DNA from: Bugula neritina
Lineage: Eukaryota; Animalia; Bryozoa
Assembly: GCA_964035545.1 (NCBI GenBank)
Contig: OZ037766.1
Coordinates: forward strand, 24,048,126-24,112,125
Length of the DNA: 64,000 nucleotides
Reading direction: 5' to 3'
Shown here: piece after piece, positions 32,765-57,000 of the stretch
Layout: each line of letters begins with the position of its first letter
Position numbering within the stretch: position 1 is the first letter of the stretch
Translations under genes and position numbers: made by a program
The notes under the pieces: model-generated
Databases searched by the model: none
What the model saw: the letters and a program-made list of their open reading frames with translations, nothing else
Told to the model about the DNA's origin: nothing

Positions 32765-33249
32765 TATTAAGACATGCTATCATTTATAATGATATATTGT
32801 ATTATATTTTATGATCATATTCAATATTATATATGGTATCCTATATATAATGAAGTTATTCTTATAGAATGGTAGTCATATAAAAGCCACCCTCTTGTCA
32901 GTTGTTATTCAGTTAGTAGTATGGCATATCACATGTTATAAAATTATTATATCTGTTTTTTATTTCAATCCAAAATTAATGTTCGTTCATCTTTTTGAAC
33001 TATTTTTATAGCTATATATTATATCACCTGTATTTTTTTATCTCCTTAGCTGTTTTAAACCTTTATAAGCCCGAATTATTTTTATTTTATATGACAATTC
33101 ATAGTAGTAATGTCATTCCCGTACCAATCAGTTGTAAATTTCATGTTATATGCTTAGGCTAATCATCACAACATAGCAACTATCAGCAGACACTTTGAGG
33201 GTAGCACCCTGAATATAGAGTTCCTCATTGTTTCAGTAAACTAGGCTCA

Positions 33250-33775
33250 TGATATTGATCCTTCTGCAGGGTACTATGTTATTTAGCTGAAATTTGTTTT
33301 ATTCCATCAAGTGCAAATGCTGCAGACACTTAGTCATGTTCTTCTGTTGTTTATTTCAATTATAACTAAAATTATGCCCTGCTGCATTTACTATAATGAT
33401 TTCGACTGCTAACATCAAATTTCCTGTAATATGCCATAAATTTTAAATTAAATTTTTCTCTATTTTTTCAATAAATTTGTATGCTATACCTATAGTTTTA
33501 ATTTTATCAATATTTATTGAAAATTTGTCTTCAAAACACCAATAATTAAATGATTTATTGTTAGGTAGTAATATATATAGTAATTGACTAACTTATTATG
33601 TTTAACTTAGCCATAATTTGCCAACTAACTTCTCATACCCATTATATAACTTCATTTATAGACCATTTTAGCTTATCTAATTTGTGAAAATTTATTTTAA
33701 ATGTCACAAGCCTGTCTGCTTTGATGCATTTTAACATTTCCATAATATGATTTGAATAAAATACAGGAATTAATA
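33250..33775. repeat. Dispersed AT-rich repeat, diverged second copy at ~53390-53820 (old non-autonomous DNA element?)
   Basis: Collinear shared blocks: CTGCTGCAT, ATAAATTTTAAATTAA, ATTTGTATGCTA, AAAACAC.AATAATT, TTTGAATAAAA. Confidence 0.6.
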
Positions 33776-34035
33776 GAATTTTTACAAACAGACATAAGAT
33801 CTAGTGATTATACAAGTGAGATTTGCGCCTCATAGATTATTTGATATATATTATGATTTCGAATATTGAACTGAAAACGATTCCTTTGCTAATTGAAGAC
33901 ATTTGCTTTATTCTGAAAATAATATTTATAAAGCATTACATAGCATGCAGTCAGCAATTAAAAAAATTATTTTTTGTAACATTTTTTTGCATGTTATAAT
34001 TAGCCACAGGCCAATTGACTTCTGCCACCACATTA

Positions 34036-34388
34036 TTAAGTGTAGCTGCTGGTTGTTCCACGAGATGTTCTACTTCTGCTACCTCTGCCATAAGTCTTGC
34101 GACTCCTGCTACTTCTGCTACCTCTGCTACTTCTACCACCTGATCTACCACCTGATCTACCACCACTACTATGTGCTCTTGCTTCTGCTTCTGCAGCTGT
34201 TACAGAGTTTTAAATTATTTTCAAGCTTCAACATTATTGTATTCATTGAATAGTTTAATGCTGTTATTGAAACCATGGCACTACAATGAATTATGCAACT
34301 ATTCAAATGAATGATTCAGAATAGTTGTTAGCTTACCCAGTGCACTGATGACAATCATCGCAATGATAGCTATAGCAATAATCTTCAT
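34036..34388 (-). CDS. Secreted Arg/Ser/Gly-rich cationic peptide precursor, paralog A, 70 aa
   Basis: Exons 34388-34337 and 34196-34036 (GT-AG, phase 1): MKIIAIAIIAMIVISALAAEAEA-RAHSSGGRSGGRSGGRSSRGSRSSRSRKTYGRGSRSRTSRGTTSSYT*; non-coding exon ends at 35757. Confidence 0.8.
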
Positions 34389-35756
34389 ATTTGAATTTGG
34401 ATTTACTTCTGAAAACAATTAGAAGTATTTTAATGCATTTCATGCAAATAGATCACTGTAATTCGAAATTCGGTAAACTTTAAATGATAATTAAATTTTA
34501 TTTCAAGCGCCAGAAAATGCTCACAGATACATAATACATTATGTATATCAATTACATATAAACATTTGCTTGTCTTTAAGTTGTAGATATTTATTCTTAA
34601 TATACAACAAATTGTAAATTGATATTTTTTGTAGCATTCAATACTTAGCTATCTCAACTAACAACGCTAAAATAACTATAATGTTTATATTATCATTGAT
34701 GTTTATATAAATGATAATTAAAAGTTTAATAATATCATTAAAGGGTTCATCAAGTCAATGAATTATTATATTCTGATTAGTCATTTTGTTAAACATATTC
34801 ACTTACATAATGTAGTCACACAATAGATTTAGCCATCAACTTATAAATTAGCAAGCTGTAAAGTACTGTTAGTTAAAATAGAATAAACCATTATATATAA
34901 TCATCTCCAAAGGCTAATATAAATAAAACTATAGATAAATAATTGACATATAAATTAATTTCTTTGTCATCCAAATTTAAAACAGATACAATTATACTGG
35001 CATTTTTCAAACTTTGCTGTCCAGGTAAACAAATTTTTTATTAGCTTCTTTATACGATTGTTCAAACTATTTTATGTTTATAGCTTAAAGTTTAGTGCTA
35101 TTTACCGTTTATAAAACTTACTATAAATCTTTTGCTTTATAATTAAGTCTAAAAAACTAGCATATTCAAAATATTAAAAGGTGGTTGTATTATAGGTGTG
35201 TAATGGCTAACAGAAATGAGAACCTCTCTGTCCCCTGCTAAACATATAGTTTATAGTTCATTATAGTTTATGGCCAGTCATAGCGTGTCCACCCCAGCCA
35301 TTCCGTTTCAAATGCAACAGGTGCCGTGGGCTGATACAGTCAATGCAGTGTAATAAATTAGCCCAGACAATAACAAGTAGATATTGGTCAGCCAATCAAG
35401 GTTGGTCTCCTATATATAATTTATACAACATCTTCTGGCGCCCACGAGCAGAAGTGGATAGTCTAGTAGCTGACAGGATGCTCCATGTAATCGCTCTGAC
35501 TATTGTTATTTTCTTTTATCAACTGATGTAATCTATTTTGCTTTGTATCTTATTTGACTAATATAATTATATCGCATCTAATCAACACGTTCGGTTCTGC
35601 TATAACTTCACTGACGATACAGTAGTCAATCGCATACAATAAGATCCACAAATATTAGTGTTTCTCAAAACTACAACATGCGAACCATAAGTTGTTCAAA
35701 TATTAACTTTAAATAAAAAGTTTGCTAGCTAAAGTGCTGATAATATTTTTACTTAC

Positions 35757-35880
35757 CTTACAATTGTTAGAATAAAAAAGTTTTTGAAGTGATATTGCAA
35801 CTGTAGGTACTGCCTTTATATACTATTCTCAGTCTATCTTTCAGACTAGACATGTGGTATTCCTTCATGTTGATTGGCTA
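35757..35880 (-). promoter_or_regulatory. CCAAT + TATA promoter and non-coding exon 1 of paralog A
   Basis: TAGCCAATC (35880-35872), TATATAAAG (35822-35814), donor AG|GTAAGT; same layout in paralogs B and C. Confidence 0.75.
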
Positions 35881-38370
35881 ATACACAATAATAACGCGCT
35901 TACAAAATCTACAACAATGACTATGGTGATTTAATAATGTTTATAAAAAAAAATTTTCCAACTAAAATTTTCTATTGGGCTATTTTTCTATTAAAAGTTA
36001 TTTGTTATAATATGATACTTTTACAAAGAAAGGCTTTTGTAATGTTGTGCCAATGTTTTATATTGAAACAAGATTTCTTTTGCCAGCTGCATGTCAATAA
36101 CTTAATCAATAAAATCTGCAATACAACTTCTACATGTGAACAACTTTTAGATGTGAAAAGCTGAAATTTAATGGGCACTTTTGTCACTCACTGTAACTTA
36201 CATTAAACTATACATGTATCTTATACTCCCACAACTTGCCGGCTCTATCACTTCAACATGACAAACAACTGTGAATTTTTGAATTTCTCAAATGATTTTT
36301 TATAAAGTAATGTTGAAAACAAAGAACATCAAGAACTGTATTATTTATAGGTTCACCTTTTTGTTAAAAATCAAGAAAATTAAACTATAATTACATTAAT
36401 ATTTTGTTCCCTTTGGAAAGATTGCTATTGAATACCCTACAAATGCAACATATTCCCTTTCTTCACATTAAAACAGAATCTCATTTTACATACCAAGGTT
36501 CAGTGTAAAAATTCAGAGAGTTATATGAAAATATAATATGTATAAGCTTGATTAAAATAATGTTCTGTTGATAGTGCAAATCTAACATGATCAGAAACGT
36601 GCATCGTTTTGGCACTAATTACAGAACTTGAACAGTAACTTAGATTGTATAAACTTGTTATCTTTAGTTTGACTATAGCTATAATATTCTGCATGTTTCT
36701 GTGAAACATTTTTGAGTGTTCAAGTTGCAAAAATGCTATTTTTTCCTATTCAAAACTGCATCAGTGTTTAGAAGAGTTTCTTTAATTAAATGAGAAAACT
36801 TGACGGATCTTCTAACTTTATATTATATGATAATAAATATCTTCATGCATGCGTAATTAATTAATTTTGTCAATAAAATATGTTTTTAGATAATTATATT
36901 ACATTTCCTGTCAACTATTTATGGCTAATATCTCCACATAAACACATAAAGTAGACATTATCTTCCAAAAAACTTTTGGGCTATGCAGCTGCATGTTTTA
37001 TAGAAACATGCAGATAGTTTCATAGGGTCATAATAGTCGTGTCGTCTAAATTAAGATTGCTATGCTATAACAAATGTTTTAATATACGGTAATGCCATTG
37101 TAAATTGTAGTTTAGATTATAATGCAGCTGTGTTAAAAACCAGCAAGATAACTATGTAATGGTTTGATTTGGGTAATATTGTCAAAAATTTTATAATCGA
37201 CAATTCTGCAGTTATATAGCATATGATGCAGCAGTGTAAGAGAAGGTATTATATAGGTTCAGCAGGATATATACAACTCATTCTATTTGATGTATTTGTA
37301 TTATATATAATAGAGAATATCTAAATATATTGGTAATGTATTGTAAACTATTTAGGACTATAGCCTATATATGGTGTTCATTAGAACAGCTTGCTGTACA
37401 GCAGAACTAAACAAGTTATGATAGTTTGAAGTTTATGCAAAACGCAACTACTTTTATAAAAATAAATAAATACGAAAAATTTTTACATTTTCATGATTAA
37501 TAAATTTACAGACAATTTTTGTTAAAGTCTTTTATTAATCAAGCTGAGCGGAAAGGCAAATACCACATACTGCTCAGCAAAAAAAGTTTTTTGATTGTTC
37601 CACGAAGATTTACTGGTCTTCCAAAATCATATTGTATAATAACGCATATCTGTAGGTATAATGTCAATATGTTGCTAGACAGTTTATGTTGCATGTTTCC
37701 TGCATGTACATTATTGATGGTTAATTCATCTATTTAAATTATCTAGTAGACAATACTATTTTTAGGTGTTTTTAATATTATTGCAATTTGATAGATATCT
37801 CATATCTATATATGATGAATGTCAATATATTAATTTTCCATGATCGAGACTGTCTTCCTTTAAACCAGCTGCATGAAGTCTCAATTATTCTTAATCTTCC
37901 TTTCTTCTCCCACAGCTGCATATATATTCTCCATATAAAACATATTGTTTATCATAAAAAATAGAACATATACGAAAAGATTATTTTTGTTACCATTTCC
38001 TAACTATCTTGCAGTACTTTAACATCATATTATTGAAATTATTTTCAAGAAATTATTATTCATGAAACTTTGAAATGACAGTTGAATATTTACTTCCTCC
38101 CACACAGCTGTATATGCTCCATATTATGACACCATCTTCCAGTGTATAATATTCAACAAAAACCAGCTATAATTGAACTATTTTCTAACAGTCTTGTGCA
38201 TGCATGGTACGTTGACTTTATGAGATATACAATATTTCAATATAAAGTTATAAGAGGACCAGTCAAGTTTTATTGTTTAACAAAAAAAAAGCTCTTCTAT
38301 ATACACTGATGCTATGTTGAAGAGAAAATAAAATTTTATAATTTGAAACATTATAGAAAAACATGTAAAC

Positions 38371-38372
<2 letters not shown>

Positions 38373-38421
<49 letters not shown>
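38373..38421. repeat. (TA)n microsatellite in the spacer of the inverted duplication
   Basis: Directly visible. Confidence 0.95.
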
Positions 38422-38424
<3 letters not shown>

Positions 38425-40343
38425 ATCAAACAAACAATATTAATTGCGAAATTAGTAATCGGGTTTGGCCAGTTTAAAAAGAAAATTTATCTCTTCAACT
38501 TTATTATTAGGTTAAGAATAACAACAAAAGTTTGTTTCATCAATTATCTAATACTTAGTTTCATTGATTTTTAAGTTTGAATATTAGACAATTTTGAGCA
38601 TAAACAGGCTGGCTAAAGTTTACTATTAATTAAAGTAACATGCCTCATTAAAATGCATGCAATAAAAACTTCTCCAAGCAAGTTTAGTTTTGTAGCTTGT
38701 AGTTTATATAAACAATGACTTGAGGTTAAGTGAAGCAGTATCATTTTGAAAAAAACTTAGGCAAAAACAGTTTACCTGTAAATATATTAATAATATCCTA
38801 TGCTCACATCTCACCGTTGATAAGTGTTGTTGTGAATATTGGTCAGATTGCAGTTAACTTAATGAATCAAAAGTGTACCTATTTTTTGTAGATTTTCTTT
38901 TTCTGTTCAGTTTGATTAATAAAAGATTTAATATAACATTAACTGAGATTTGTAAAACGTTTCCGAGTTATTTTCTATATAAAAGGAATTCTGCCTGGCA
39001 TAAATTGTTTAGTTCTGCTGACCATTAGCTGTCCTAATGAACACCATATAAATAGTCTTAGCTAGTTTGCAATACATTACCAATATATTAATCGATACTC
39101 TCTATTATATATAATACAAAGACATCAAATAGAATGAGTTGTATATATCCTGCTGAACCTATAATACCTCCTCTTACACAGCTGTGTCATATGCTATATA
39201 ACAGCATTAATTAGTCTATCGTAATATTTATGACAAGATTACCCAAGTCACCATTTCCTAACTATCTTGCCGGTTTGTAACGCAGCTGCATTATCTAAAT
39301 TGCAGTACATTGGTATCATCAAATCATCACCTCACAAAATTGTCTGCTTCCTAATCTTAAAACAAACAGCTGCCTAGTCCAATAATTTTTCTTATAACAG
39401 TTTTGTCTACCTTTTAACTTACATAGAAATATTAGCAGTATATATTATATGCAGTTTACAGAAAAGGTTTTTTAAAATAGTGGGCAACATTTTGACATTA
39501 CGCTTATCAAGTTTCCTTATTTTACAAAACAAACTTTTCTGTGTTCGTATGCTGCTTCAAATAGGCCAAACATGGCATAATATTTTGTAACTTCAACTTC
39601 AAAAATTTAAAACTATCAAACTATCAATAACATCTGATACTTTAATAAATAAGTTTATGGCTGATTTAAAAGAAATAAATGTTTCAGATCTCCTAAACTC
39701 TAAAGTTGAGTTAAATATTTGCACCATCAAAAAAGTTATCAGGTCTATATAATTCCATAAATCTACAGATTTTTACACTAATTATCGGTATGTGAAATGA
39801 ACCTCTACAGTTTGATATATTATGTCACAGCTATAGGGTATCTAATAATAAACATTCAAAAAAATTATTTGAATGATTATAAATATGCAGCTTAAATTTT
39901 ACGAATGCTACTATTGCAGTGTGAGCTCCCATAATTATAATTTTTTTTGTGCTTTCAAAACACTAACTATCTGATATAAATAAGAATTCATCATGCAAAA
40001 TCTTAAACCGTGAAGTTATAAGAGTAGCTACAGTCTATAGTTTAATGGTATATATTATAATAAGTTGTATTGTGTAATCACAAAGTCAATCATACATCAT
40101 TTGTTCACATATAAAAACTATTCATATGAAAAGCTGTGTTACATATATTTGATTAGCAAAAAAGTCAGTTTAATGACAAACTTTAGCCAAATAAAATAAA
40201 CAATTATTTCTTCATAAAAATAACATGTTTCAACAAGTAAGTTATGAACAGTTCAATAAAGAATTTAGCAAACAAAAAACAGTTTTCTATAAAATTACCA
40301 TGATTCTTGTTGTAGGATTTGTAAGGAAGTTATTAATGTGTAT

Positions 40344-40461
40344 TAGCCAATCAAAATGAAGCAGTACCACATGTCTAGAGTGAATGATCGACTGAGGATG
40401 GTATATAAAGACAGTGGCTGCAATAGCAATTCAAAAACTTTTTTACTTCAACAATCGCAAG
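40344..40461 (+). promoter_or_regulatory. CCAAT + TATA promoter and non-coding exon 1 of paralog B
   Basis: CCAAT 40347, TATATAAA 40402, donor AG|GTAAGT at 40461/2, acceptor TTTTCAG at 40800. Confidence 0.75.
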
Positions 40462-40820
40462 GTAAGTAAGTAAGCATCTTAGCTAATATATTCACTGTAA
40501 TCTGTAAAAGTTCTGTATAATATGTTTCTTTATATTATATAAACCTGGCAAACAGTATAACTTATCATATACTGGCAAACTTTTGAATACATGCATATTA
40601 ATATATTGCTCAAAATTTTTAAACATTTTCATATATACCACAATGTTCAAAAATTTTGTAAGTATTGTATTTATAAGGATATACCTACATTTGTTTTCGT
40701 TTGAAAAACATCTAATTTTTATTCATAATTAATTATTGATTTTTAAGTAACACTGATCTATTCGAATGAAATGTATTAAAATACTACTAATTGTTTTCAG
40801 AAACAAATCCAAATTCAAAT

Positions 40821-41176
40821 ATGAAGATTATTGCTATAGCTATTATTGCGATGATTGTCATCAGTGCATTGGGTAAGCTAACAGCTATTCTGAATCATCT
40901 ATTTAAGTAGTTGCATAATTCATTGTAGTGCCATGGTTTCAATAACAGCATTAAACTATTCAATGAATACAATACTGTTGAAACTTGAAAATAACTTAAG
41001 ATTCTGTAACAGCTGCAGGAGCAGAAGCAAGAGCACATAGCAGTGGTGGTAGATCAGGTGGTAGATCAGGTGGTAGAAGTAGCAGAGGTAGCAGAAGTAG
41101 CAGAAGTAGCTACAGGAGTAGCAGAGGTAGCAGAAGTAGAACATCTCGTGGAACAACCAGCAGCTACGGCCATTAA
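40821..41176 (+). CDS. Secreted Arg/Ser/Gly-rich cationic peptide precursor, paralog B, 71 aa
   Basis: Exons 40821-40872 and 41013-41176: MKIIAIAIIAMIVISALAAGAEA-RAHSSGGRSGGRSGGRSSRGSRSSRSSYRSSRGSRSRTSRGTTSSYGH*; several differences from A are synonymous in this frame (ATC/ATT, CTG/TTG, AGT/AGC, AGG/AGA). Confidence 0.8.
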
Positions 41177-41684
41177 TGATGTGGTGGCAGAAGTCAATTG
41201 GCCTGTGGCTAACTATAACATGACCTTTACATGTTGATTTAAAAAATTGATAAAAAATTATTTTTTCAAAAACAAACTGTTCCAGTTGCTGACTAAACAT
41301 TGTATATTGCTTAAGTATAGTTTTCAAAATAAAGCAAATGTCTTTAATTGGCAAAAGAATCTTTTTCATTTAAATATTTGAGTTTTTGTTATATATATAT
41401 CAAAAATAGCTGATATGAGACACAAAACTGTATGTCAACTTTTTGAAATTCGAACCCATTGTGGTTCAATTAAAAGTAACAATCCTATAATACAGTATTT
41501 TTACTAATAATTCAATCAACAGTTTTTTAGTACTGAAAGCAGTACAATGAAAATGACTAAAGAAACAAACAATATATTTTAGACCGCACTAATTACCAAC
41601 AAGTTATATACGCCAATTTTTTATTGAATGCGCTATAGGAAGCTAAGTTCTTAATTTAATAAAATAGAAGCGGGTAGAATTAGG

Positions 41685-43177
41685 CTATTCGAGCATATCG
41701 TATCACATAATATCAACTGTTTCCTCGAATCAAATGACCTGTTTTACCCACACCAACATGGTTTCAGGACAAATCATGGCTGCGATACTCAGTTGTTGAA
41801 TACCGTGAGTGAATTTATAGATTTTTTCGACGAAATGATACCGGTTGACCTCGCTGTCTTGGATTTTTCAAAGGCCTTTGACGTTGTGTCGCACCATAAA
41901 CTACAGGTTAAACTGCTAAATATCGGAATAGCTGATAAAACTGTCAAATGGATTTTTTCATGGCTTCAGAACCGTCTTCTTTCAGTCTGTGTCAACAACG
42001 TCAAATCGGCCACTAGACATGTGACCTCAGGAGTGCCCCAAGGCAGTGTATTAGGACCATTGTTATTTAATGTGTACATAAATGACATGCACTCTGCGGT
42101 AGCCAACAGCAAGCTTAAGCTATATGCAGATGATTCCTTGTTGTACAAACCAATCACAACACCTGCTGATTCTAGTTTATTTCAGAATGACTTAGACCAT
42201 CTTATAACTTGGGCAGACAGTTCTCAGATGAAGTTCAATATAAATAAATGTGAGCATATGACAATTCAACGCTCCACTGTAAATCCTCTAGTGTCTCAAT
42301 ACAGCATGAATAATGACCCCTTACAATGTGTTGACAAAGTATTATACCTTGGTGTCACGATTGATAATAAACTGTCATTCGATCAACATATAATAAACAT
42401 TTGCTCAAAAGCTAATAAATTATTACACATGCTGATGCGCTGTCTAAAAAAGGCTAAAAGTAAAACCAGAGCCATAGCTTATAAAACAGTCTGTCGCCCT
42501 ATACTAGGATTTGCGCCCCACACCTGGTCTCCATTTAAATTGAAAAACATCAACATCATAGAAGGTATAAATAGAAAAGCCTTCAGGTGGACATTCTGTA
42601 AGAGAAAACGAGATCATATAACTGAGCTCATGACAAATTCTAATTGGGATAGCCTTGCACAAAGATGTGACAATGCAGACCAAAAAATGTACTTTCGTAT
42701 GCTTTCTGGTAGTGCCGCTATAGACCAAGACCGGTTCTCCCTTCATTTTGCAGAGTCTCACAATACCAGACATGGTGCTATTAAGGGCAATATCAATACC
42801 AAAACTGCCAAACATTCATATAAACATCGCATCCATAAACTTTTCTAATGATTTTAGCTGCTTTGCCTAACTGATTATAAGCACTTAACACCGACTCTGC
42901 TTTATATCATCTGAAGCTGTGCGGTGTATATTTATTTATTTATTTACTTTTTTTTGTTTTTTTTTGTTTTTTTTTTTCTTTCCTTCTCTTCTGGCAGTAG
43001 CTAGCTATTGAGCTTTAAATCAAGGCATAATTAACTATATTCTTATCTCGTAGACAAAATAGTTTTCTTCCTAATACTGATAAACTAAACAATTGTTCAT
43101 ACACCACTGCATCTCGATAAAGAAGCCAAAGCGCTCCGAGTGAGATTAATTAGATGAGATGAGATGAGATGAGATGA
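41685..43177 (+). mobile_element. 5'-truncated non-LTR retrotransposon (CR1/L2-like clade); RT ORF to 42848, 3'UTR and (AGATG)5 tail
   Basis: FEHIV..QHGFR..CDTQL, LDFSKAFD, SGVPQGSVLGPLLF, LYADD, YLGVTID motifs; microsatellite tail at 43152-43176. Confidence 0.9.
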
Positions 43178-43339
43178 ACCAAAAGTTGCGTTTTTTGAGG
43201 ATAAATTTTAAAAAACTTTTTTGCGAATCCAAAGACCAGCACCATAAAAACCAGTCATATGTTGCTGTCTTTGTCAAATAAAATTAAATACAAACCATTT
43301 TACAAAGATAGAGCCACTTTTTTACTGTGTGTTTTTGGC

Positions 43340-44551
43340 ACAGTGTGCTCACCAGGGCAAGTTGAGCTACCCTGTGTGAAAGTTGAACCAGTACCATTTG
43401 TCCTACAATATAAATTGTTTTACCTTCTTTAATTGCAAGTTGAAAAACAATTTATTAAAGGTCAACCATAAATATCATTTTAAAATTAGAAGAAATTGGC
43501 ATTAAAAAATAGCAGAAACTCTGGATGTGATCGGTCATTGAACCATTCAACATCTCAAAGATAGGCAATGCAAAACCCAAGCAGCAGCAGCAGCAGCAAA
43601 CTGGTAGAAAAACTTTCAAAATGTGCTTTACAGATATGAAATGGGGTTTTCCGTATGTCATCAAAAAATATTCTGTATTTTTGAGTATAACCAACTTTTC
43701 TTGAGAGCTGCTTGAAAGCTCTCAACAATGGCAAATGATTTACACGACTGCTTTGCTTTGCTATAGTCATATTGCAGTAATTTAACTTTCTTAATCTGTT
43801 TTTTTTTGTTTATGTAATTTTGCACCATTCTGAAAACATTTGCAGAATAGCTTAATTACACTGTTGACGAATATTTCCATTTGTTCTAGGACTTAATGTA
43901 TGTTTTGATTTATCCATTGATGCATCTAGTTATTTCTACTAAGTTCCTCGCAATTATAGACACACTAATTTTTACATTTAAGTCTATATCTTTCTTATTT
44001 AAAATCTTTCTGCTATGGCAGAAAGATTTTAAATAAGAAAGATATAGACTTAAATGTAAAAATTAGTGTGTCTATAATTGCAAAGAACCTAGTAGAAATA
44101 ACTAGTGGAGCAAGTTGTACCTGGTTCAACTTACTCCACTTTCTATGTAGTTCAACTAGCTCCACACCCTCATGCTCCAATTTATTGTCAATATCTGCTG
44201 TGAGTGAGATATCTGTGTGACTTCAAGTTATTGCTCAGCTTTAAGATCATTTTGAAGACACATGCCTGAATTTATTTGACCGGCCTGTTAAAACCCTAGA
44301 AGCTATATTCATTTTTTTTATGAAAAAAGGAGTTTTTTGTTAGCTCCTTTTTTATGCAAAAACTCTGAGAAATACTCACTCACCTAAAAACTGTTGCTTT
44401 GATTTTATGCATTTTCATATGTCTATTGGTAGTTCATCTAAAACACTTTTAAGTAAAAGAGATAAAATAGTGCAATGATGTAAAAAAGAAAACTTAGAGT
44501 AATTTGTGATTCAACTAGCCTCGTGGTTCAACTAGCCTCACTATGCTGTAA
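43340..44551. mobile_element. Possible old non-autonomous DNA transposon with GTTGAACC/GGTTCAAC subterminal repeats
   Basis: GGGCAAGTTGAGC and AAGTTGAACC at the left end; TTCAACTAGCCTC twice at the right end; related motifs at 44107-44165. Confidence 0.4.
43926..44105. repeat. Near-perfect 180-bp palindrome
   Basis: Perfect 64-bp arms 43950-44013 / 44018-44081 around a TATG loop, plus 24 bp more with 3 mismatches. Confidence 0.95.
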
Positions 44552-46213
44552 TCATGCAGTTTTTAATTTTATTGCTGTTTATTATAATGGTTATCTTTAC
44601 ATAATTTAAAATATTAACAAAATGTTATAGCCTACTATATATTCCAGTCATCTAACTTGAAGGTGTAAAACTACATATCTTTGAGTATAGTTTTAATGTG
44701 TTTCTAGAGAGTTTGTGAGAAATTTCCTGTAAACTATATATAAACTGTTCATCTTTTATGTCAGTTATATGGTAGACAATACCCATACGAAGCCTCATTA
44801 AAACAATGCAGCTGTACTATAAAAAGTAAGTAAATTCCATGGGGATAATTTACTATATTATGCTACAACAAAAACACCAACTTGAAAATTTCAAATTTAT
44901 ATTTAGCTGCTGTCCAACTAAACAATTGATGCATATATTAAGTATTCAAAGATGACTATTGTAACAGTAGCTAGCAGCATTTTTACATGCACAGTGTGTG
45001 CATGTGTGTTTCATATAGTCCATCATCATAGTGTATTAATAGCTTCTAAACAAGACAATAAATTCTTACAACTGCGCAGCAAAGATCACAATTAGTGAAT
45101 CAAGTGTGTTGCAAAAGTCTAAGACAACAAGTCTGCCGGAACATTTATGTTCCCTTATTTGGAATTACTTGGGGCTGGTGGTGCAATTTGGGTGACCAAT
45201 GAGATCTGGAACACATCATTTTTGTTTATTTGTTTTTGTGTATTATTCTGCTGCTGTTGGAAAGTATTGGTTATCCTGATCAGTTTCAATTAGTAGAGCT
45301 AAAAAGCAAGTTATACTACTTATAATTTTACATTAAACAAGATACATATTACTAACTATTGAAATCTAAGAGCAGAAGCCATATTATCAAGTTATCAGAG
45401 AAGAGCTAAAGATTTGTCTGCTATATTAATTGTTCTATCATTTATTGTCTTAATGCTGTAATATCGATTCATTTAGTTTATATTATATAAAATGGTTTAT
45501 AGCTGACATTATTTTTAGTGAACTATTATGCAGTAATATTTTTGCTCACTTTAATAATTTTTTTGTGTCATTTTCTTACAGTTCTTACTTTCTTGTACTT
45601 TATTTAGCCTTATATTGTGTATTTTATTTAGATTTAATGGTGTAGCTTTGTGAGCAAAGTGTTATAAGTTGGAATAAAATACTATTAACTACACTCAAAA
45701 GACATCAGTTGAATTCCGAAACCTATAACTCTGATAAGCTTGCGGTTGCGAGCAGACTAAACAAAACTGCTACAACTATATATAGCAGCTAAGCAAGTTA
45801 TACATTAGTCATTAAAAAGAAATTATTGCAAACGTGTAATTGTTGATAATTATGAATATAATAAATATGGTGCCTTCCTGTCAATTGTTACATTTCGATT
45901 TTATACTTTTAGTACTAAAAACTGTTGAATTTATTTGGTGCTTTCAATTGAATTGAAATGCTGCAATGGAATGTCTACCTTTGTTTATTCCTGTGAAGTT
46001 TGAATTTTGCATTTAATTTTGTGTCTTTTGGTTATCCATTGTACTAGAAACTGTAATAAAACAAGAAGTTTTTTGCTAATTCAATTGCTCTACTTTATTG
46101 TGAAAAACTTTTAGGAATTACACAAAGTAAAGACAGCAACTAGAAAAATTAGCCTTTGAAAATATAACTTTGTTTAAGAAAATTTCAGAGTACCATTGAA
46201 AGACATGTCCAGG

Positions 46214-46579
46214 TTAGTGATAATGAGGTGGACAACGTGGTTGACCTCTGCCACCACACCTTCTCCCATGGCCGTTGCGTCCGTGCGATTGATACGGTTT
46301 TCTACCTCTGTCACTTCTTCTACCACCGTGTCTATAAGCCTCAGCTACTAAAACTGGTGAATATTCTTAAATTAGTTGGATGTTTTAATAGCAAACAATA
46401 GTGTATTTGTTTAATGATGCTGTTATTGAAACCATGGCACTGTGCAATAAATTATGCAATCACTTTTAGTATTTCAATCAGGTTTCACAGTTTTTCATTT
46501 AAAATTTACAATATAGTTCAAGCTTACCCAACGCACTGATGACAATCATGACAATTACAGCTACAGCAAGAACCTTCAT
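46214..46579 (-). CDS. Secreted Arg/Gly/His-rich peptide precursor with a Cys pair, paralog C, 61 aa
   Basis: Exons 46579-46528 and 46347-46214: MKVLAVAVIVMIVISALVAEA-YRHGGRRSDRGRKPYQSHGRNGHGRRCGGRGQPRCPPHYH*; same 52-nt phase-1 signal exon as A and B; not in the ORF track. Confidence 0.8.
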
Positions 46580-47535
46580 ATTGAATTTGTGTCTGCAAAA
46601 ATAATTGATAGCATTTGAGGCCTTTATACATGCAATAAGACCAGTGTGAATTATAAATCATTATAATAGGAATAGTAAATAAATATTTTCATACTCAAAG
46701 AAATAAACACAGTATCATAAAACACTATATCAATATAACCATTTGCCAAAATAGTATTAACTCAGACATTGATTTTTATCATGAAGCAAAATTTTTATAA
46801 ATTGATATAGTTGAGCCGTGAATTACAATACTTATAGCTATCTGAACTAGCAATACTAATTTTAACATAAAGTGCATATTACTGTTAATTTTTAATTTTT
46901 TACTGTTTGAAAGTTTAGCAATGTTATTATTAGCTTCACTAGGTTTACAAATAAAAACAAAATCATCCTTAACTATCATAGGTTGTAGTGGTTTGAAGAG
47001 CCACTTTATACAATGTAGTCACATATTATATAATGCAGCATAAAATTTTATTAACCGAGCACTGTTAGCTAAAATAAATTGAAACTTTATGATCAATGTT
47101 TAAATCTAACCTAAAGGAAACTGTAATATATAAAAACTTTTTTCTAAAATTTTGGGTTACATATTTTTGAACATATTTGTTCATATTTTTATAATTTTCC
47201 GTCTAGTTAACCAGAGTTTTAATTACTTTTGCGTTTGCATAATAAAACAAGTTGTATTTGTACAGTTTAATGTACTTTCAAATTTAAAAGCTAAAATTGA
47301 ATGTATATATAGCATATAGGCAAATTTAATGCTGAATTAGTATGATTTTTTATTGTATACATGTTATAATATTTTTTATTCATTAGCAAAGAATTAGTAC
47401 ACTAAAGAAAACAATAAATTCAGCATTATTCAACAAACTATTATATAACAAAATATTCAGCTGTTCAAATAGTACAATAGTACGAAACATAAAATTAATC
47501 TGTTTGTAAAAAAAACTCCAAATTCCTTCACTTAC

Positions 47536-47656
47536 CTCAAAATTGCTAGAGTTTGAATGCTGTTGAAATTATACTGCAGCTACAGCCTTTATATAGCACT
47601 CTGAGACAATTTTGCAGATTAGAAGTATCGCATTGCTATTCAAGTTGATTGGCTAA
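47536..47656 (-). promoter_or_regulatory. CCAAT + TATA promoter and non-coding exon 1 of paralog C
   Basis: TAGCCAATCAA (~47655-47645), TATATAAA (47595-47588), donor AG|GTAAGT at 47536/5. Confidence 0.7.
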
Positions 47657-48346
47657 TATACATCAATAATCTTCTAACGATTTTAGCAATGATAATTTTT
47701 GCATGCTTGTAAAAAAGAGTTTTCGGATTTGGCTATAGTTTTCGATTCACTGATATGCCTGTCGACAGATAAATTTTAATAATAATCCATAAACTATGTA
47801 ATACAACTTTTTATATGAATAGCTTTTACATATAAAAAATTGAGGTATATACTATATAAACAACATTACTATAACTCAACCTAAATACCATTGGACAAAC
47901 ACTCACATATCCTAATTTTTAAGATGTTATATAGATAAATAATTAATCATTTTTAAAAATTTAATATAGTTTTGTATAAATTAAACCTTGCAGAAAGAAC
48001 GATAAATTCACTAAATATTATGTAATTCCACTTTAATTGTATATCATTCAACGAGATTAACCTACAGTATTAGGTTAAACTGTTTATTCTGTCTTTTTGA
48101 AATTTTACCACAGGATACCCTACATATTTTATTCCATTAGACATCATGCAATGTCTAGGCTTCTTATCCTACTTAGCAATGTCTAGCACACAGGATGGCA
48201 ATAGTAATTAGACTCTAAACAAGTAATATTTTGCGATGGTCTAAATACAAATAAGAACTTAAATAACTATGAATAATTTGTTTGTTTTTCAAACCAGAGA
48301 AAGTTAAGCACAAAATAATGGAATGTTATTGCACGTCTGATCCTAG

Positions 48347-48347
<1 letters not shown>

Positions 48348-48428
<81 letters not shown>
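48348..48428. repeat. (TA)n microsatellite
   Basis: Directly visible. Confidence 0.95.
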
Positions 48429-48430
<2 letters not shown>

Positions 48431-50750
48431 TCAAAATTAAATCACAAGTTTTTAGAAAATTAAGTTGTAGCCTGACAGTAAAAATAAACTGATAATAAGC
48501 TGCTGAAGCACTAATGACTATTCAGCAAAACCTGGTAAACATAGTTTTGACAAAACCATATTACATGAACATCATTGAACCAAACAAAACTGTAAATAAT
48601 ATTTGCAAATTTATATCCTTATAGCTGAAAGAAGTGAAAAATCATTTTAGTATTTCAATACTTTTCATTTAATTTTATTAGGCCCATGTATATGTAGCAT
48701 GAATAGGAATTCATAAAAATTTCTAGCACTGTAAAAATAAATTGCTTTTGACATAGTTTTGAAATGGAACTATTTAAAAGTCATAGAATATTATTAGAAT
48801 AATAATACTTATACATTTTACACACAAAAAACAGTTATCAATAAATATGAAAAGTAAACCTGATTGATAGTCACAGATCAAAAAAATTGCCAGCAAAAAA
48901 ACATTTTATACTAAACTGGAAAGATAACATGATATGTGATATCGGTGTTCATTGCTTAGTAACAATTGATTTCTTAACAACAATTGGCCCCCAGTTGTTG
49001 AAAAGACGCTTACGACCTAAAGACATGCACTATTTTTTATACTGAAGTCATTGCAACTCATGAAATTGCAAAAATAAATTGTGTTATATACTGATAATAA
49101 TATGCTATGAAATATCCAAGAGATCATATGCATGTAGCCTATAATAGCCATGTTTGGTTACTAAACCAACTCCCATTATTTGAATAATATATCAAAGTTT
49201 TCTCTCTGCTCCTATTTTGCTGAATAAAGTTTATGGGGAAACAACTCATTTCCAACAACTAAGTTGTATGATGCTTAAATAAAAATCATCTAAACTATTT
49301 GAATGACTCGTAAGCATTACATCATATACTGTTTAAGTATGGAGTGTCAAATGGTCAAAAATTCACTTATTATCTAATATTAAAATGCCATCTATATTGA
49401 TAAGAATTTTTCATAAACTAGTGAATGGGAATTGACAAACAGAATTTCAAGAAACAAGCAACATATAAAATTTAAGTGTGCACATGGATTTTGCAAAATG
49501 TTACATAACTGAAGGGCAGTAAACTTTAAATCCATCAGCTTTAAATATATATTATTAAATGTTATTGGTTAAACCATATATACTATAACCATTGGTTGTG
49601 CAGTGTTTCTAAAAGTAGGACACAAAAAAGGTGCAGCTGCCACTAACCTCAATATAACTGCAATAGAATGGACTTTATCCGTTAGTAATCTGACGTTCAG
49701 GACGAACAGAGTTATAAAAAGTGCATTATATTATAATATATTTTGGGCACCAAACTTCTTATTGTAATGATCAGATATGGTTGCTCTATAAATAATCTAA
49801 AAAATTACTGAAAGATTATATTATTTCAGTCATCTAACACACCAGTGCATGCAGTACTGTAATAATACATGTCTATAGGTATAATGTCAATGTGTTGCTA
49901 AATAGTTTATAATATATTTCCTGTAAACTATTTATTGCTAATCTTTCTAGGTTTATCACCGTGGTAGACAATACTTTTTATGAAGCATTATTGAGACAAT
50001 GCAGCTGTGTTAAAAGGCATGTTTCATGGGAATAAATTTATAAAGACTTTTAAAGCAATCATCTTTACAATATAGTGTCAGTGTACTACACTGTTTCTGT
50101 TAGGAAATGGTAATGGAAGCAATTTTAGTATGTGTGTTAAAAGTAGAGCATTATTAAGCCAATGCTGCTGTATAAGAAGGTGGCAAGCTTCATGGGAGTA
50201 TGTACTTGAACAATACTTCCATGCGGCAAAAACAACAACTTGATAATTTTACTATTTTGTTTAGCTGCAGTCAATCCATGCACTTGATATACATTTATTC
50301 AGTATCCTGCTATTACTATAGCAGCTATAGACTAGTTGTCAACTATATAGCCATCAACGAGTTTATTTGGTTTTGAGTTATTTTTAAACACAAAAAAAAT
50401 ATTAAAAACAAATAAATAAGCAGAAAATAATGCCCAAACATTTATTTTGAACAGAATCGTCTATCTTAAGCTATAAGGGAAACTCTACATCTCACATGAG
50501 AACAGTTTCTAATGCCCTTCATTAATAAAAGCCCACATCTTACTATATAACACTATAATACAAATCAATTATTTAGGTATATATCCCAAGAATCTAAAAA
50601 GATGGTTTAAGAGTTTAAGAGTCACAGTAAAATATGGTACATATATACAAACTAAATTATTATCTTTTAACCCAACATTAGGAAATTTTATTGTTACTAA
50701 AAAATAGCAGCATAAAGAAAAAATACATTGCAAAAAAATTTATGTGGATT

Positions 50751-52142
50751 TTAGCGAGGAGGATCTTTTGCTGTACTAAACTTAACATTTAAGGAATATA
50801 TCATCTTTGATATTTTTGATGAAGCAGAAAAATCCGCTAGCAATTTGTTTATAAGTTTTGATGCAGAGCCTACACGGGTTAATCCATGGAAGTGATTATC
50901 ATATTTACTTGGTGCTTCGCAACACTTGAGCTCAATTAAACAAACGCTAGTAGTAATCCGGTTTGAATCATTTAGAACTGAATAACACAGAGCACATGCA
51001 TCAGCACCATCTGTCAGTTGGGATTTTTTAACTGTTATTTTTGAGATTCCATATTCTAGTAATCTGATTAAAGAATTCGAATAATATGGTAAATGATCCA
51101 AAGTGTTTTGTTCAAATGTATGTGCAGCTGAAGGGAAATTTTTAAAACTCATATGTTGGCTAGGGACGTTTAAATAGGCAGCATTAAGTAATGGCTTTGT
51201 AGTTGAAAAGGAAAAGTTTTTAAGCAAATTCAACCATACCATGCAAGAACTAATTGGGTAATGTAAAGCAGAATCCAGCTCTTCAAAGCATGTTTTCACA
51301 TACTCTTTTCTATAAATAGCTGCATAAAGTGTCAGATTTTGAGCTTCAACGCTCAACTGTGACTCTTGACAAGTCAGTTTACGGATATGTATGGTTCTGT
51401 TCCCACCATGAAGGTTGTCTACCATTTCAGCAGTTAAGCTATATAATGGCTCTTGTGATTGAATGCTTGATTTACTCCTATCTAGTAGTACTTTGGTTAT
51501 GCTCGGAAAAGATATTTCTTTCAATCTAGTTTTCCATAAATCAGTGTATATTTTTAGTTCACGCTCTACATAACGCGGCAGTTGCATAAACAAGACATCT
51601 CTCGATGTTGCTGCTGCTAGATGTTTACTGACCAAAACAGATTCTTGCCAAGCTAAAATGTCAATTTGAAAATAAAAAGTGATTAAAACCGAACAAATGT
51701 TTGGGATACGTTCACTTTTTACCAATTTCTGCAATTTTTGATTATTCAAAGCTAATTCTTTACTTATCATATCAGCTAACTTCGTATCATGAAGCTTAGT
51801 CTTAAGGGGTAAATACATTTCAATCAGATATTTTACATAGCTGTTAAGATAAGAGCAAAAGTCAAGAATCTCAGGAACTGGCTTTAGTGGATGATAGGTT
51901 AGAAAAATGACATCTCTAAGTTCCTTCATATAGTCACCATCCTTTCTTTGCCCAAAAACAAATGGAAGTGCACTCAGACCTAAACTTGGCTTTGTCAGTA
52001 TCACAGCAAAAAGCTGAACTATGATCTTATGAGATGTGGTACTAGGAACTGTAGGAAAGTAAGCACTAGGTTCAATTGTTGTCTCTTTTGGTACAGGGTT
52101 CTTAGTCTTAGAGACATCAGCTGACTTCCTTTTAGTAGCCAT
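50751..52142 (-). CDS. Uncharacterised 463-aa protein, coding region in one exon
   Basis: 1392-nt open frame in very AT-rich DNA with an ACCATGG start context; acceptor at ~52213 and donor AG|GTGAGT at ~53089 suggest a non-coding first exon; no family recognised. Confidence 0.75.
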   Translation of the reverse strand: MATKRKSADVSKTKNPVPKETTIEPSAYFPTVPSTTSHKIIVQLFAVILTKPSLGLSALPFVFGQRKDGDYMKELRDVIFLTYHPLKPVPEILDFCSYLNSYVKYLIEMYLPLKTKLHDTKLADMISKELALNNQKLQKLVKSERIPNICSVLITFYFQIDILAWQESVLVSKHLAAATSRDVLFMQLPRYVERELKIYTDLWKTRLKEISFPSITKVLLDRSKSSIQSQEPLYSLTAEMVDNLHGGNRTIHIRKLTCQESQLSVEAQNLTLYAAIYRKEYVKTCFEELDSALHYPISSCMVWLNLLKNFSFSTTKPLLNAAYLNVPSQHMSFKNFPSAAHTFEQNTLDHLPYYSNSLIRLLEYGISKITVKKSQLTDGADACALCYSVLNDSNRITTSVCLIELKCCEAPSKYDNHFHGLTRVGSASKLINKLLADFSASSKISKMIYSLNVKFSTAKDPPR

Positions 52143-54072: not shown

Positions 54073-57000
54073 CTATACATCCATGTCTTCAGTGTCTACA
54101 TGTGACACAGATTCCTTTAGTTTCTGCACAATTCTAATGTAAGCCTTAGTAACCAGACTGTCAGGATATTCGGTGTACAGAGATATGCCCTGATCACAGC
54201 ATTGAGCTAGTTTAGGATCCAAGGGTATAGAGCCTAGGTAGGGCACATCTAAAACATACGGAGCAAACAATACTTTGTTGAAGAGTGTGACTAAAATGGG
54301 TAGCCACTCGGTGTCGCGGTCCGTGACACCCAATTTAGTCATTAGGGGGGTTGACTAAAATGGGTGTCGCGAAAAAGTTTCGTTTTATTTTCAAATTCTT
54401 ACAGTTGTGACTGTTGATTTACTGTTAAATAAATTTTCAGTGAATAATGAATATATAAACCAAAATACATCAATAAATAATGCTAAAATTGAAATAATTG
54501 CAACAAAAACAAACTTGTTAAGAGTTATCTTTCCTTGTCAAAATATCAATTTTCAACTTAATTTTATTGTTATTTAAGAGATCATAGACATGCTGACTTA
54601 TAAAACATATACTGTCAGCTAGTAAAAATGCTGAGAGCAATATTAACAACAAGCAAAAATGTTTACGAAGTGTGAAAATAAAACTAAAAATCTTCGTGAC
54701 GCCCATTTTATGTAGTTAAAACACCCACGAATGACTAAAATGGGTGTCACAGTGATTTTTGCTTTATTTTTAGCTTTCTGGGCGGCTTTGGATTAAATAA
54801 ATTATGTCATATTAAAACTTCTATTTGCTTTTACTAATTTAGATTATCAAAACTTGTAATACTCATAAATATTGAGAAAAAAATGGTAAGAAAGAAACAA
54901 AGAGCAAAGGAAAGATAACTCTAGGGAGTGTCACTGCTCGTTTTGGTTTTTATTATAATATTTTATCTTTATTGTAAATTGTTATGTCATTTGAGATAAA
55001 ACAATTATTATATATTAAGGTTTTCCCAGAGTTTTGATCAACAATCAATTTAACAAGAATTGCCAAAAAGCTGAAAAATAAAACAAAAGTCACCGTGACA
55101 CCCATTTTAGTCATTCTGGGGGGTTTCAACTAAAATGGGTGTCGCGAAAATGTTTAATCTTTTCTAAACCTTGAGAAAATTTTTGTTTTTTCAATATCGC
55201 TTTCAGCGTTTTTACTAGTTTAAAGTATATGTTTTATAAGTCAGCATGTCTATAATCACAACGATAACAGTAAAATTATGTGAAAATTGAATTTTTGATA
55301 AGGAAAGACAACTCTTGACGAGTTCGGTTTTTGTTATAATTACTTCAATTTTATCATTATCTATTTATGCTTATTGGTTCGATTGTGACATGTTCATTAT
55401 TCACTGGAGATTTATTTAACAATACTTTTAGCAGTCACAACAGTAAAAATAAAACGAAATTTTTCGTGACACCCATTTTAGTCAAAGCCCCTTTGTGACA
55501 CTGGGTGGCCAACCATTTTAGTCACACCTTCTGTTGAGCTATAGTAACACTATGTCAAATGCATCGTACAAAGATAAATCGTACTGTATCTAAAAGATTA
55601 TTGTAGAGTGTATTTAGCTATCTACTGCAGATTGCATTTAGCAATCTACGGCCATATATAATTATAATACTAATCTAATATGGCCTAGAAAAACAATAAC
55701 ACATTGCATTCAGAATTTATTCCAAAATGAAAATTATATTAAAATGCTTAAACCCCTCTTCCAATTGCTTGCCATAATATTTCTCAACAACTAGTAGGTT
55801 GATCTATAATATAACTCACAAATGCTCTCCAAGACAAATAATTAATGATTATCTCAGGAAGCGGTTCATTTTATTATATAACATATACGGAAGGTTAGAA
55901 AATCTAATAAGGGCCATTTTACTTAATTTAGTACACACTATATATCTCTAGATTTTAGCTATTTCTCACAGTTGGGCAGTTAATGTAGGCTACATATATA
56001 GTACATAGTTTCTTGCATTTGCCTGATAAAATATTAACAAATACTGCTGAATAATCAAGGATTTTTCTAATTTTGCTTGCTTTTCTGTTTTTCATAAATT
56101 AGGTGGTGATTTTTTCATCACGGCCTGCACACTAGATATTTAGTTCGTTCTCAATTGAGTAAAACGACCCATACAGCTTTAGGAGTTGGCTACCCTTAGA
56201 TAAACTAATGACTTAATGTAAGCAAGTTGAAAAAGAAGTTCTCAATTTACATTTTGAAGATATTCATTGCCAAGAGGAAAATAAAAACATCAACTACTAA
56301 CCCATGTCGGTGGCCATTTTTCTTACTCCATCAACTTCGGAGACAGGAAATATCTCGGAATGATACGAACATGTCGGGCAAATAAATGTTGACATGTTTT
56401 CAATTACTCCAATAACTTTGAGCCCTACTTTCTTACAAAAACTGATTTCTTTTCTGACATCACTAAGTGACACTTCTGCTGGGGTGGTTACAATGACTGC
56501 TCCGTCTATATGAGACCTGAAGTATATAGGATCACAGACTAGGCTACCAAGTCTCAATGGATAAAGTAATGTGACGCAATAGAAAAAGCAGAAAATAAAA
56601 ACTATCCAGCAGCACACTGAGCTACTATATAGCTTTTTATTTGTATATATTGCAGTGCCAAAGTTCTTTAATCAAGCTCTAGAATGACTCTAGACATAAA
56701 CCTCAAATACATGGTCCCAAGGCTTACCTAAATCCAATGATTCCCACTTATATCAACTCAAACAAGTGCACACTAATCTACCATGAAATAGTTGGCTCAC
56801 AAACTGACCCTTTCAAATACTGTACGATGGACAGATGCTCGTCTGAAGTGCCTGGAGGCGTGTCCACCACTAAGTAGTCCTGATATCCCCAGTCAACATC
56901 TCTTAGGAACTGCTTGATCAGTCCATTCTTCTTTGGCCCTCGCCAGATCACAGCTTCATCAGCACTACACAGGGAATATGTTGAATATGAAATCAATTGG

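Follow-up and report, generated by a model that had tools for sequence, protein, structure and literature searches.

Three genes for predicted secreted peptides in the window

We analyzed a 64,000-nucleotide (nt) stretch of the genome of the bryozoan Bugula neritina (contig OZ037766.1, positions 24,048,126 to 24,112,125 of the forward strand), hereafter the window, which contains three paralogous genes, A, B, and C, predicted to encode short, secreted, cationic peptides. An initial annotation had described them as a three-gene family with a common promoter, a non-coding exon, and a 52-nt phase-1 signal-peptide exon, and this architecture held in all three genes. In each, a CCAAT box is followed 57 to 59 nt downstream by a TATA box, and an ATG-free first exon, a first intron, splice donors and acceptors, and an AATAAA poly(A) signal are also present (Table 1). 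Translation of the window models gives open frames and GT..AG introns after the 52-nt signal exon in A, B, and C, and a nucleotide profile search found exactly three copies of the signal exon in the 64-kb window.

The phase-1 second intron is 140 nt long in A and B and 174 to 180 nt long in C, depending on the acceptor. The acceptor of C had been placed at 46347, but homology points to the CAG before 46353, which results in a 174-nt intron, a 23-amino-acid (aa) leader, and a 63-aa precursor. C probably splices at 46353 because this site gives the 23-aa leader found in every other family member; 46347 is an in-frame alternative, and the mature peptide annotated initially is identical with either acceptor. 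Intron 2 also holds a conserved block, about 25 nt of which are near-identical in A, B, and C and better conserved than their coding exons. The block has no copy elsewhere in the genome and no Rfam match, and an Rfam search of window positions 33000 to 48500 likewise returned no match.

A and B lie head to head as the two halves of an inverted duplication. We rejected the possibility that they are haplotypes of one locus, an assembly artifact, because both are covered at full depth in one DNA run (about 130x each versus about 65x at heterozygous sites), which identifies them as separate paralogous loci. Joints found in that run are not evidence of splicing, as they derive from DNA and from paralogous contigs. 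An inverted-repeat pair between A and B (37119-37420 and 38999-39294, 84%) may belong to the inverted duplication.

Translation confirmed the annotated composition of the mature peptides: A has 47 aa (12 Arg, 1 Lys) and B has 48 aa (12 Arg), both without acidic residues or Cys, while C has 40 aa (10 Arg, 9 Gly, 5 His, 2 Cys, 1 Asp). All three leaders start with MK and have a hydrophobic core with a mean hydropathy of 3.25 to 3.3 and an A-x-A site. A and B are composed of GGRS and SRxSR repeats with 21% Gly, 32 to 38% Ser, two Tyr each, and no Phe, and their coding sequences carry 2.8 tandem copies of a 12-nt unit and 6.9 of a 9-nt unit. Hydrophobic residues make up 2 to 5% of the three mature peptides (2% in A and B), and the grand average of hydropathy ranges from -1.7 to -2.2. 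All three dibasic sites in C are preceded by Gly, A and B contain five to six R-x-x-R sites, and none of the peptides contains an S-x-E/D kinase site.

Table 1. Predicted features of genes A, B, and C (window coordinates)
Feature	Position	Strand	Remarks
A, coding	34388-34337 + 34196-34036	-	Translated model, predicted splicing
A, promoter	35815..35879	-	CCAAT box 35879-35871, TATA box 35822-35815; pattern search
A, non-coding exon 1	35757..35797	-	Predicted, start approximate; intron 1 35756-34409
A, exon 2	34337..34408	-	20-nt 5' untranslated region (UTR), 52-nt signal-peptide coding part; ATG 34388, phase-1 donor
A, exon 3 coding	34036..34196	-	Leader end AAEAEA, 47-aa Arg/Ser/Gly mature peptide, net +13
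A, 3' UTR stretch	34000..34032	-	Homologous in frame to two-Cys tail of C; z 9.6, 0/2000 shuffles
A, AATAAA	33907..33912	-	
B, coding	40821-40872 + 41013-41176	+	Translated model, predicted splicing
B, promoter	40345..40409	+	CCAAT box 40345-40353, TATA box 40402-40409; pattern search
B, non-coding exon 1	40428..40461	+	Predicted, start approximate; intron 1 40462-40800
B, exon 2	40801..40872	+	5' UTR, 52-nt signal-peptide coding part; ATG 40821
B, exon 3 coding	41013..41176	+	Leader end AAGAEA, 48-aa Arg/Ser/Gly mature peptide, net +12
B, 3' UTR stretch	41180..41212	+	Homologous in frame to two-Cys tail of C; z 11.5, 0/2000 shuffles
B, AATAAA	41328..41333	+	
C, coding	46579-46528 + exon 3 (46353-46214)	-	Translated model, predicted splicing
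C, promoter	47588..47654	-	CCAAT box 47654-47646, TATA box 47595-47588; pattern search
C, non-coding exon 1	47536..47570	-	Predicted, start approximate; intron 1 47535-46593
C, exon 2	46528..46592	-	5' UTR, 52-nt signal-peptide coding part; ATG 46579
C, exon 3 coding	46214..46353	-	40-aa Arg/Gly/His peptide, two Cys, net +10; acceptor by homology
C, AATAAA	46094..46099	-	
Intron 2 conserved block, A	34218-34308		
Intron 2 conserved block, B	40911-40979	+	About 79% identical to C
Intron 2 conserved block, C	46459-46394		

A family of at least 37 genes

We scanned the B. neritina assembly tzBugNeri2.1 (216,009,554 bases in 321 pieces), which is described as 216.00 Mb in 320 scaffolds plus the mitochondrion, with a chromosome 2 of 33.58 Mb and a chromosome 9 of 10.88 Mb (PMC11480708). 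A pattern of the signal-exon end and its donor matched 37 times versus once for a control: three times on chromosome 1, three times on chromosome 2 (A, B, and C), and 31 times on chromosome 9, where 28 of the copies lie within 4.42 to 4.67 Mb. The CCAAT..TATA promoter pattern gave 32 matches versus 1 for its control, 17 of them at family loci. These ratios make a chance origin of the signal exon of A, B, and C untenable. The genes thus belong, by sequence, to a family of at least 37 members on chromosomes 1, 2, and 9 rather than to the family of three proposed initially. Across peptide types, signal exons differ at a proportion of 0.34 of synonymous sites (pS) versus 0.14 of nonsynonymous sites (pN). 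We read 11 intact signal exons together with their last exons, and the remaining copies are classified by coordinates only.

A, B, and C are outliers of the family, 21 genes of which carry peptides with six cysteines. A, B, and C share a homologous promoter, signal exon, and last-exon start with the six-Cys array on chromosome 9. Linear peptides also occur elsewhere in the family, as Tyr/Lys-rich 24-mers (chromosome 9 loci L004 and L009), a His/Gly/Tyr/Lys-rich 38-mer (chromosome 9 locus L011), and Pro/Arg-rich 24-mers (chromosome 1 loci L012, L013, and L017). The linear members on chromosome 9 have 7 to 8 Tyr in addition to Lys and His.

Chromosome 1 also holds a broken copy (L018:1501-1560, chromosome 1 19761262, plus strand), whose signal exon is truncated by a deletion and which keeps a near-match to the family's 3' UTR motif. 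Further signal-exon or weak six-Cys matches on chromosome 9 (3.15-3.26, 4.33-4.35, 4.56-4.61, 7.48, and 10.07 Mb) and chromosome 4 (17.41-17.42 Mb) are probably additional members; four weak ones contain a stop codon.

The spliced models were searched exon by exon against sequence databases. Exon 3 of A gave 192 candidates among 5.8 billion proteins, none at an E value of 0.01; the exons of A, B, and C had no match in Pfam, and B had no homolog in the Atlas. Ankyrin matches of C in the PDB were spurious, and no other match was found there. A six-Cys profile search found no homolog, and the single match of another, a 450-aa repeat protein, was judged spurious. Eight matches in a metagenome scan with the signal exon were all attributable to chance. 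The homolog searches are length-limited, are weak for low-complexity peptides, and may not cover the source genome. Our literature search, which left subscription journals mostly uncovered, surfaced no gene-encoded antimicrobial peptide from any bryozoan and no bryozoan peptide comparable to these. These results indicate an undescribed, lineage-restricted family of real genes, though one of a known general design, and support the uncharacterized secreted cationic peptide family supposed in the initial annotation.

Six-cysteine paralogs on chromosome 9

A six-Cys exon lies 186 to 391 nt downstream of 21 of the 31 signal exons on chromosome 9. A six-Cys profile identified 23 strong copies at 4.42 to 4.58 Mb, and 14 of the exons share one profile score, which suggests identical peptides produced by recent amplification or gene conversion. 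The peptides are 38 aa long (loci L005 and L038), with the cysteine spacing C-x6-C-x3-C-x9-C-x4-C-x-C and, in the three copies read, an invariant Lys before the fourth Cys. An AlphaFold model (predicted local distance difference test score [pLDDT] 83) contains a helix (H13-22) and two strands (E27-31 and E34-40). The best VIA fold match is a plant defensin (Z 5.5, root mean square deviation 1.8 over 41 residues), and the top natural fold matches are defensins (plant defensins) and short scorpion toxins. With Atlas scores of 0.75 to 0.82 and weak Pfam and PDB sequence matches, the peptides look like members of the CSαβ clan. By their spacing and predicted fold, the six-Cys paralogs belong to the CSαβ superfamily. 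A and B, with no Cys, and C, with two, lack the six cysteines and the C-x3-C and C-x-C motifs that define CSαβ defensins.

At locus L005 (chromosome 9 4421231-4422050, minus strand), two last exons that encode different six-Cys peptides (L005:293-421 and L005:984-1112) lie in tandem behind a single signal exon. They have similar intron ends and represent a duplicated terminal exon, possibly in alternative use.

Divergence within the last exon

The first 20 nt or so of the last exon are common to all members, and a 16-nt 3' UTR motif lies 27 to 34 nt past the stop codon in six-Cys, Tyr/Lys-rich, and Pro/Arg-rich genes. All 15 exact genome matches of this motif fall in family genes, covering these three peptide types. 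Since the last exon is homologous at both ends and differs in its middle alone, whole-exon swapping of the classical kind is unlikely. Nor do the comparisons show that the linear peptides eroded directly from a defensin, or the reverse: the mature regions of different peptide types have no convincing similarity.

The last nine codons of C align without gaps with the stop codon and 3' UTR of L011 (29 of 48 nt identical versus 12 expected, 0 of 20,000 shuffles), the stop codon of C sits within the family 3' UTR motif, and the second introns of the two genes align. In A and B, the 3' UTR matches the two-Cys tail of C in frame, behind a double stop (Table 1). The homology of the C 3' UTR to the family is clear through the linear members and the shared 16-nt motif. 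The link of A and B to the defensins runs through the promoter, the signal exon, the exon start, and a chain via C and the linear members on chromosome 9.

Tandem slippage and stop-codon shifts are thus visible in the sequences as two local mechanisms of change. In the simplest reading, a linear gene of the chromosome 9 type (His/Gly/Tyr/Lys-rich and L011-like) probably moved to chromosome 2, where it would have extended its coding region into its own 3' UTR to become C, and a duplicate would then have been shortened and repeat-expanded to give A and B. A tree of the sequences common to the family (92 columns) gives no order of events.

The mature region had initially been taken to change fast, which does not apply between A and B: 6 of 69 codons encode different amino acids, 5 of them within one block. 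The signal exons of A and B differ only synonymously, and the 42 mature codons outside the block carry one synonymous change. Mature coding sequence outside the block differs at 1 of 126 nt versus 10 of 140 nt in the intron (p 0.011, for a region chosen post hoc), whereas over the whole of exon 3 the two genes diverge as much as in the intron (13 of 158 nt versus 10 of 140 nt, p 0.83).

Proposed function and alternative explanations

We consider it fairly probable that A, B, and C are secreted host-defense polycations. One chassis, consisting of the CCAAT/TATA promoter, the non-coding exon, the 52-nt signal exon, and a last exon with fixed ends, was duplicated at least 37 times. Most copies are predicted to make peptides with the CSαβ defensin fold; in others, linear cationic peptides would have taken the place of the mature stretch. 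The 23-aa leader would be cut after AEA, and the products of A, B, and C would be secreted alongside the defensins. As unstructured polycations, A and B may bind anionic microbial surfaces and then neutralize or cross them; uptake or synergy with the defensins are further plausible modes, and C could add a small disulfide loop.

Defense is favored because the same chassis carries more than 20 peptides with the CSαβ defensin fold, and of the functions proposed in the initial annotation, this one gains support. The leader features, short length, and net charge of +10 to +13 are those of antimicrobial peptides. The amphipathic hydrophobic face typical of many such peptides is absent from A, B, and C, and A and B, with 2% hydrophobic residues, are unlikely to form pores through an amphipathic helix. 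Defense is also favored because each linear type resembles a class of tested antimicrobial peptides in composition, with histatin- and shepherin-like His/Gly/Tyr peptides as analogs of the His/Gly/Tyr/Lys-rich type. Further analogs are the Gly/Arg-rich armadillidins (PMC7017220) and the Pro/Arg-rich myticalins (PMC5577615). Defense peptide and toxin families typically combine a conserved signal with a hypervariable mature peptide (PMC6245896).

Several points weigh against this interpretation. A common chassis demonstrates common descent but not a common function, and a polycation that is not amphipathic may be only weakly active at the salt concentration of seawater. Foldseek matches of the six-Cys model are weak (E above 0.2), and the matches of the six-Cys peptides to PF14866 (E 0.0014 to 0.085, 14 to 19 bits) are under the cutoff of 27. 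Nor can antibacterial defensins be told apart from K+-channel-toxin-like peptides on the basis of these matches. A and B differ little and show no sign of diversifying selection, and a direct comparison of their 3' UTRs with those of the defensins gave no significant match (z 0.4 to 1.9).

A structural or adhesive role appears unlikely, though it would fit several properties of the linear members. These could have been co-opted from the defense family as components of cuticle, mucus, or larval cement; Arg-rich A and B would form complexes with polysaccharides that are anionic or with acidic proteins, and Tyr/Lys/His members could be cross-linked through 3,4-dihydroxyphenylalanine (DOPA). A and B are repetitive, disordered, and almost free of hydrophobic residues, their mature coding sequence outside one block is more conserved than the intron in the post hoc comparison above, and the Tyr-rich linear members on chromosome 9 resemble mussel foot proteins in composition. 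However, the majority of the family consists of compact defensin-fold peptides, and our literature search surfaced no paper on comparable Bugula cement proteins. Mussel foot protein 3 is rich in Tyr (DOPA), and the sabellariid cement protein Pc3 is acidic through phosphoserine. Like A and B, these proteins are small, secreted, and Arg/Gly-rich or Ser-rich, but no homology to them was found, and A and B have two Tyr each and no acidic kinase site. With no S-x-E/D site in A, B, or C and no acidic residue in A or B, the phosphoserine cement put forward in the initial annotation is unsupported.

Two further explanations are improbable. The first is chemical defense against grazers or settling competitors, in which the six-Cys peptides would act on invertebrate ion channels while the linear polycations would assist them by acting on membranes or penetrating cells. 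In the PDB, the six-Cys profile has its best sequence matches among short scorpion K+-channel blockers (E 0.017 to 4), the Lys before the fourth Cys is invariant in the three copies read, and the phase-1 layout also serves both CSαβ and linear peptides in scorpion venom genes (PMC5308243). Nevertheless, these matches are not significant and are mixed with nasonin and an arthropod defensin, the top fold matches are plant defensins, and nothing in this explanation touches A, B, or C directly. Bryozoans are not known to have a venom apparatus. The second takes A and B for silent or decaying copies of a gene that has lost its function, produced by premature stops and repeat slippage. The double stop ahead of the region that C translates, the broken copy on chromosome 1, and the equal divergence of exon 3 and the intron would fit such decay, but both genes keep intact frames, promoters, signal exons, splice sites, and poly(A) signals, with the synonymous pattern described above.

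A signaling precursor, in which C would be cut at its dibasic sites into short amidated peptides and A and B at their R-x-x-R sites, is highly improbable: although such sites are present in all three peptides, they arise readily from a Gly/Arg-rich composition, acidic spacers and a conserved repeated C-terminal motif are lacking, Pro follows one of the sites, and the surrounding family is defensin-like. The signaling role suggested initially hinges solely on the Gly-preceded dibasic sites of C.

A host-defense role would make this family a defined set of candidate defense peptides for a bryozoan. B. neritina must also manage a bacterial symbiont that produces bryostatins. The retention of promoter, signal exon, and 3' UTR while the peptide is replaced shows new secreted peptides arising from an existing gene, and the family shows both recruitment and loss of 3' UTR sequence as coding sequence. 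A more far-reaching version is possible but doubtful, namely that four unrelated classes of defense peptide (CSαβ, His/Gly/Tyr/Lys-rich, Pro/Arg-rich, and Arg/Ser/Gly-rich) came from one chassis by mid-exon rewriting and stop shifts, with A and B as new protamine-like, non-amphipathic secreted antimicrobials that work in seawater. If true, the family would offer a tractable example of common ancestry between linear antimicrobial peptides and defensin genes. Frogs, mussels, and scorpions already provide well-known cases of the conserved-signal, hypervariable-mature design, and invertebrate genomes commonly encode short cationic peptides that are lineage-specific.

Neighboring features in the window

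Between B and C lie a 351-aa open reading frame that reads like a fragment of a long interspersed nuclear element (LINE) reverse transcriptase (41793-42848, plus strand) and a 180-nt near-perfect inverted repeat (43926-44105). Farther along are an intronless 463-aa open reading frame that has neither a Pfam match nor an exact database entry (50751-52142, minus strand), an inverted-repeat pair (54344-54781 and 55063-55492, 79%), and an exon of a NUBP/Mrp-type iron-sulfur (Fe-S) assembly ATPase gene (56297-56617, minus strand; Pfam ParA). One neighboring gene matches a contig from a JGI set that bears the B. neritina mitogenome accession, and the match extends over its introns.

Comparison with known systems

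Armadillidins are Gly-rich linear antimicrobial peptides with GGGX repeats, aromatic residues, and about 50% Gly or more (PMC7017220). Like A and B, they are secreted, linear, Gly/Arg-rich, and lineage-restricted, with 47 to 57 aa, short repeats, and a high pI. The GGRS and SRxSR repeats of A and B, together with their Gly, Ser, and Phe content, set them apart; there is no sequence homology, and no GGG run occurs in mature A, B, or C. Myticalins are a multigene family of marine mussels, with an anionic C-terminal propeptide and with signal and mature peptide in one exon (PMC5577615). They share with the Bugula family a filter-feeding host, a conserved signal peptide, a non-coding first exon, and hypervariable Arg-rich linear peptides in compositional subfamilies. 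In contrast, the Bugula precursors end in the cationic peptide, with no propeptide, a phase-1 intron splits their leader, and six-Cys members are present; A, B, and C have neither an anionic propeptide after a dibasic site nor the single-exon layout.

The CSαβ (cis-)defensins and short scorpion toxins carry a phase-1 intron where the signal ends (PMC5308243, citing Froy and Gurevitz 2003). The paralogs on chromosome 9 resemble them in Cys spacing, predicted fold, and gene layout, and A, B, and C match the layout. The published scorpion/defensin model invokes exon shuffling between unrelated leaders and mature exons (PMC5308243). Unlike in that model, the Bugula leaders share homology and the last exon is common to the members at both ends, a pattern that points to replacement within this exon.

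In the precursors of frog skin defense peptides, the signal is conserved and the mature domain is hypermutable (PMC6245896, citing Vanhoye et al. 2003). As in the Bugula family, one conserved preproregion precedes structurally unrelated mature peptides; the Bugula precursors differ in having no acidic spacer or KR cleavage site and in ranging from a three-disulfide fold to fully linear peptides, with no homology between the two groups. On these analogies, A, B, and C resemble members of the conserved-signal, hypervariable-peptide defense families of frogs, mussels, and scorpion venom genes.

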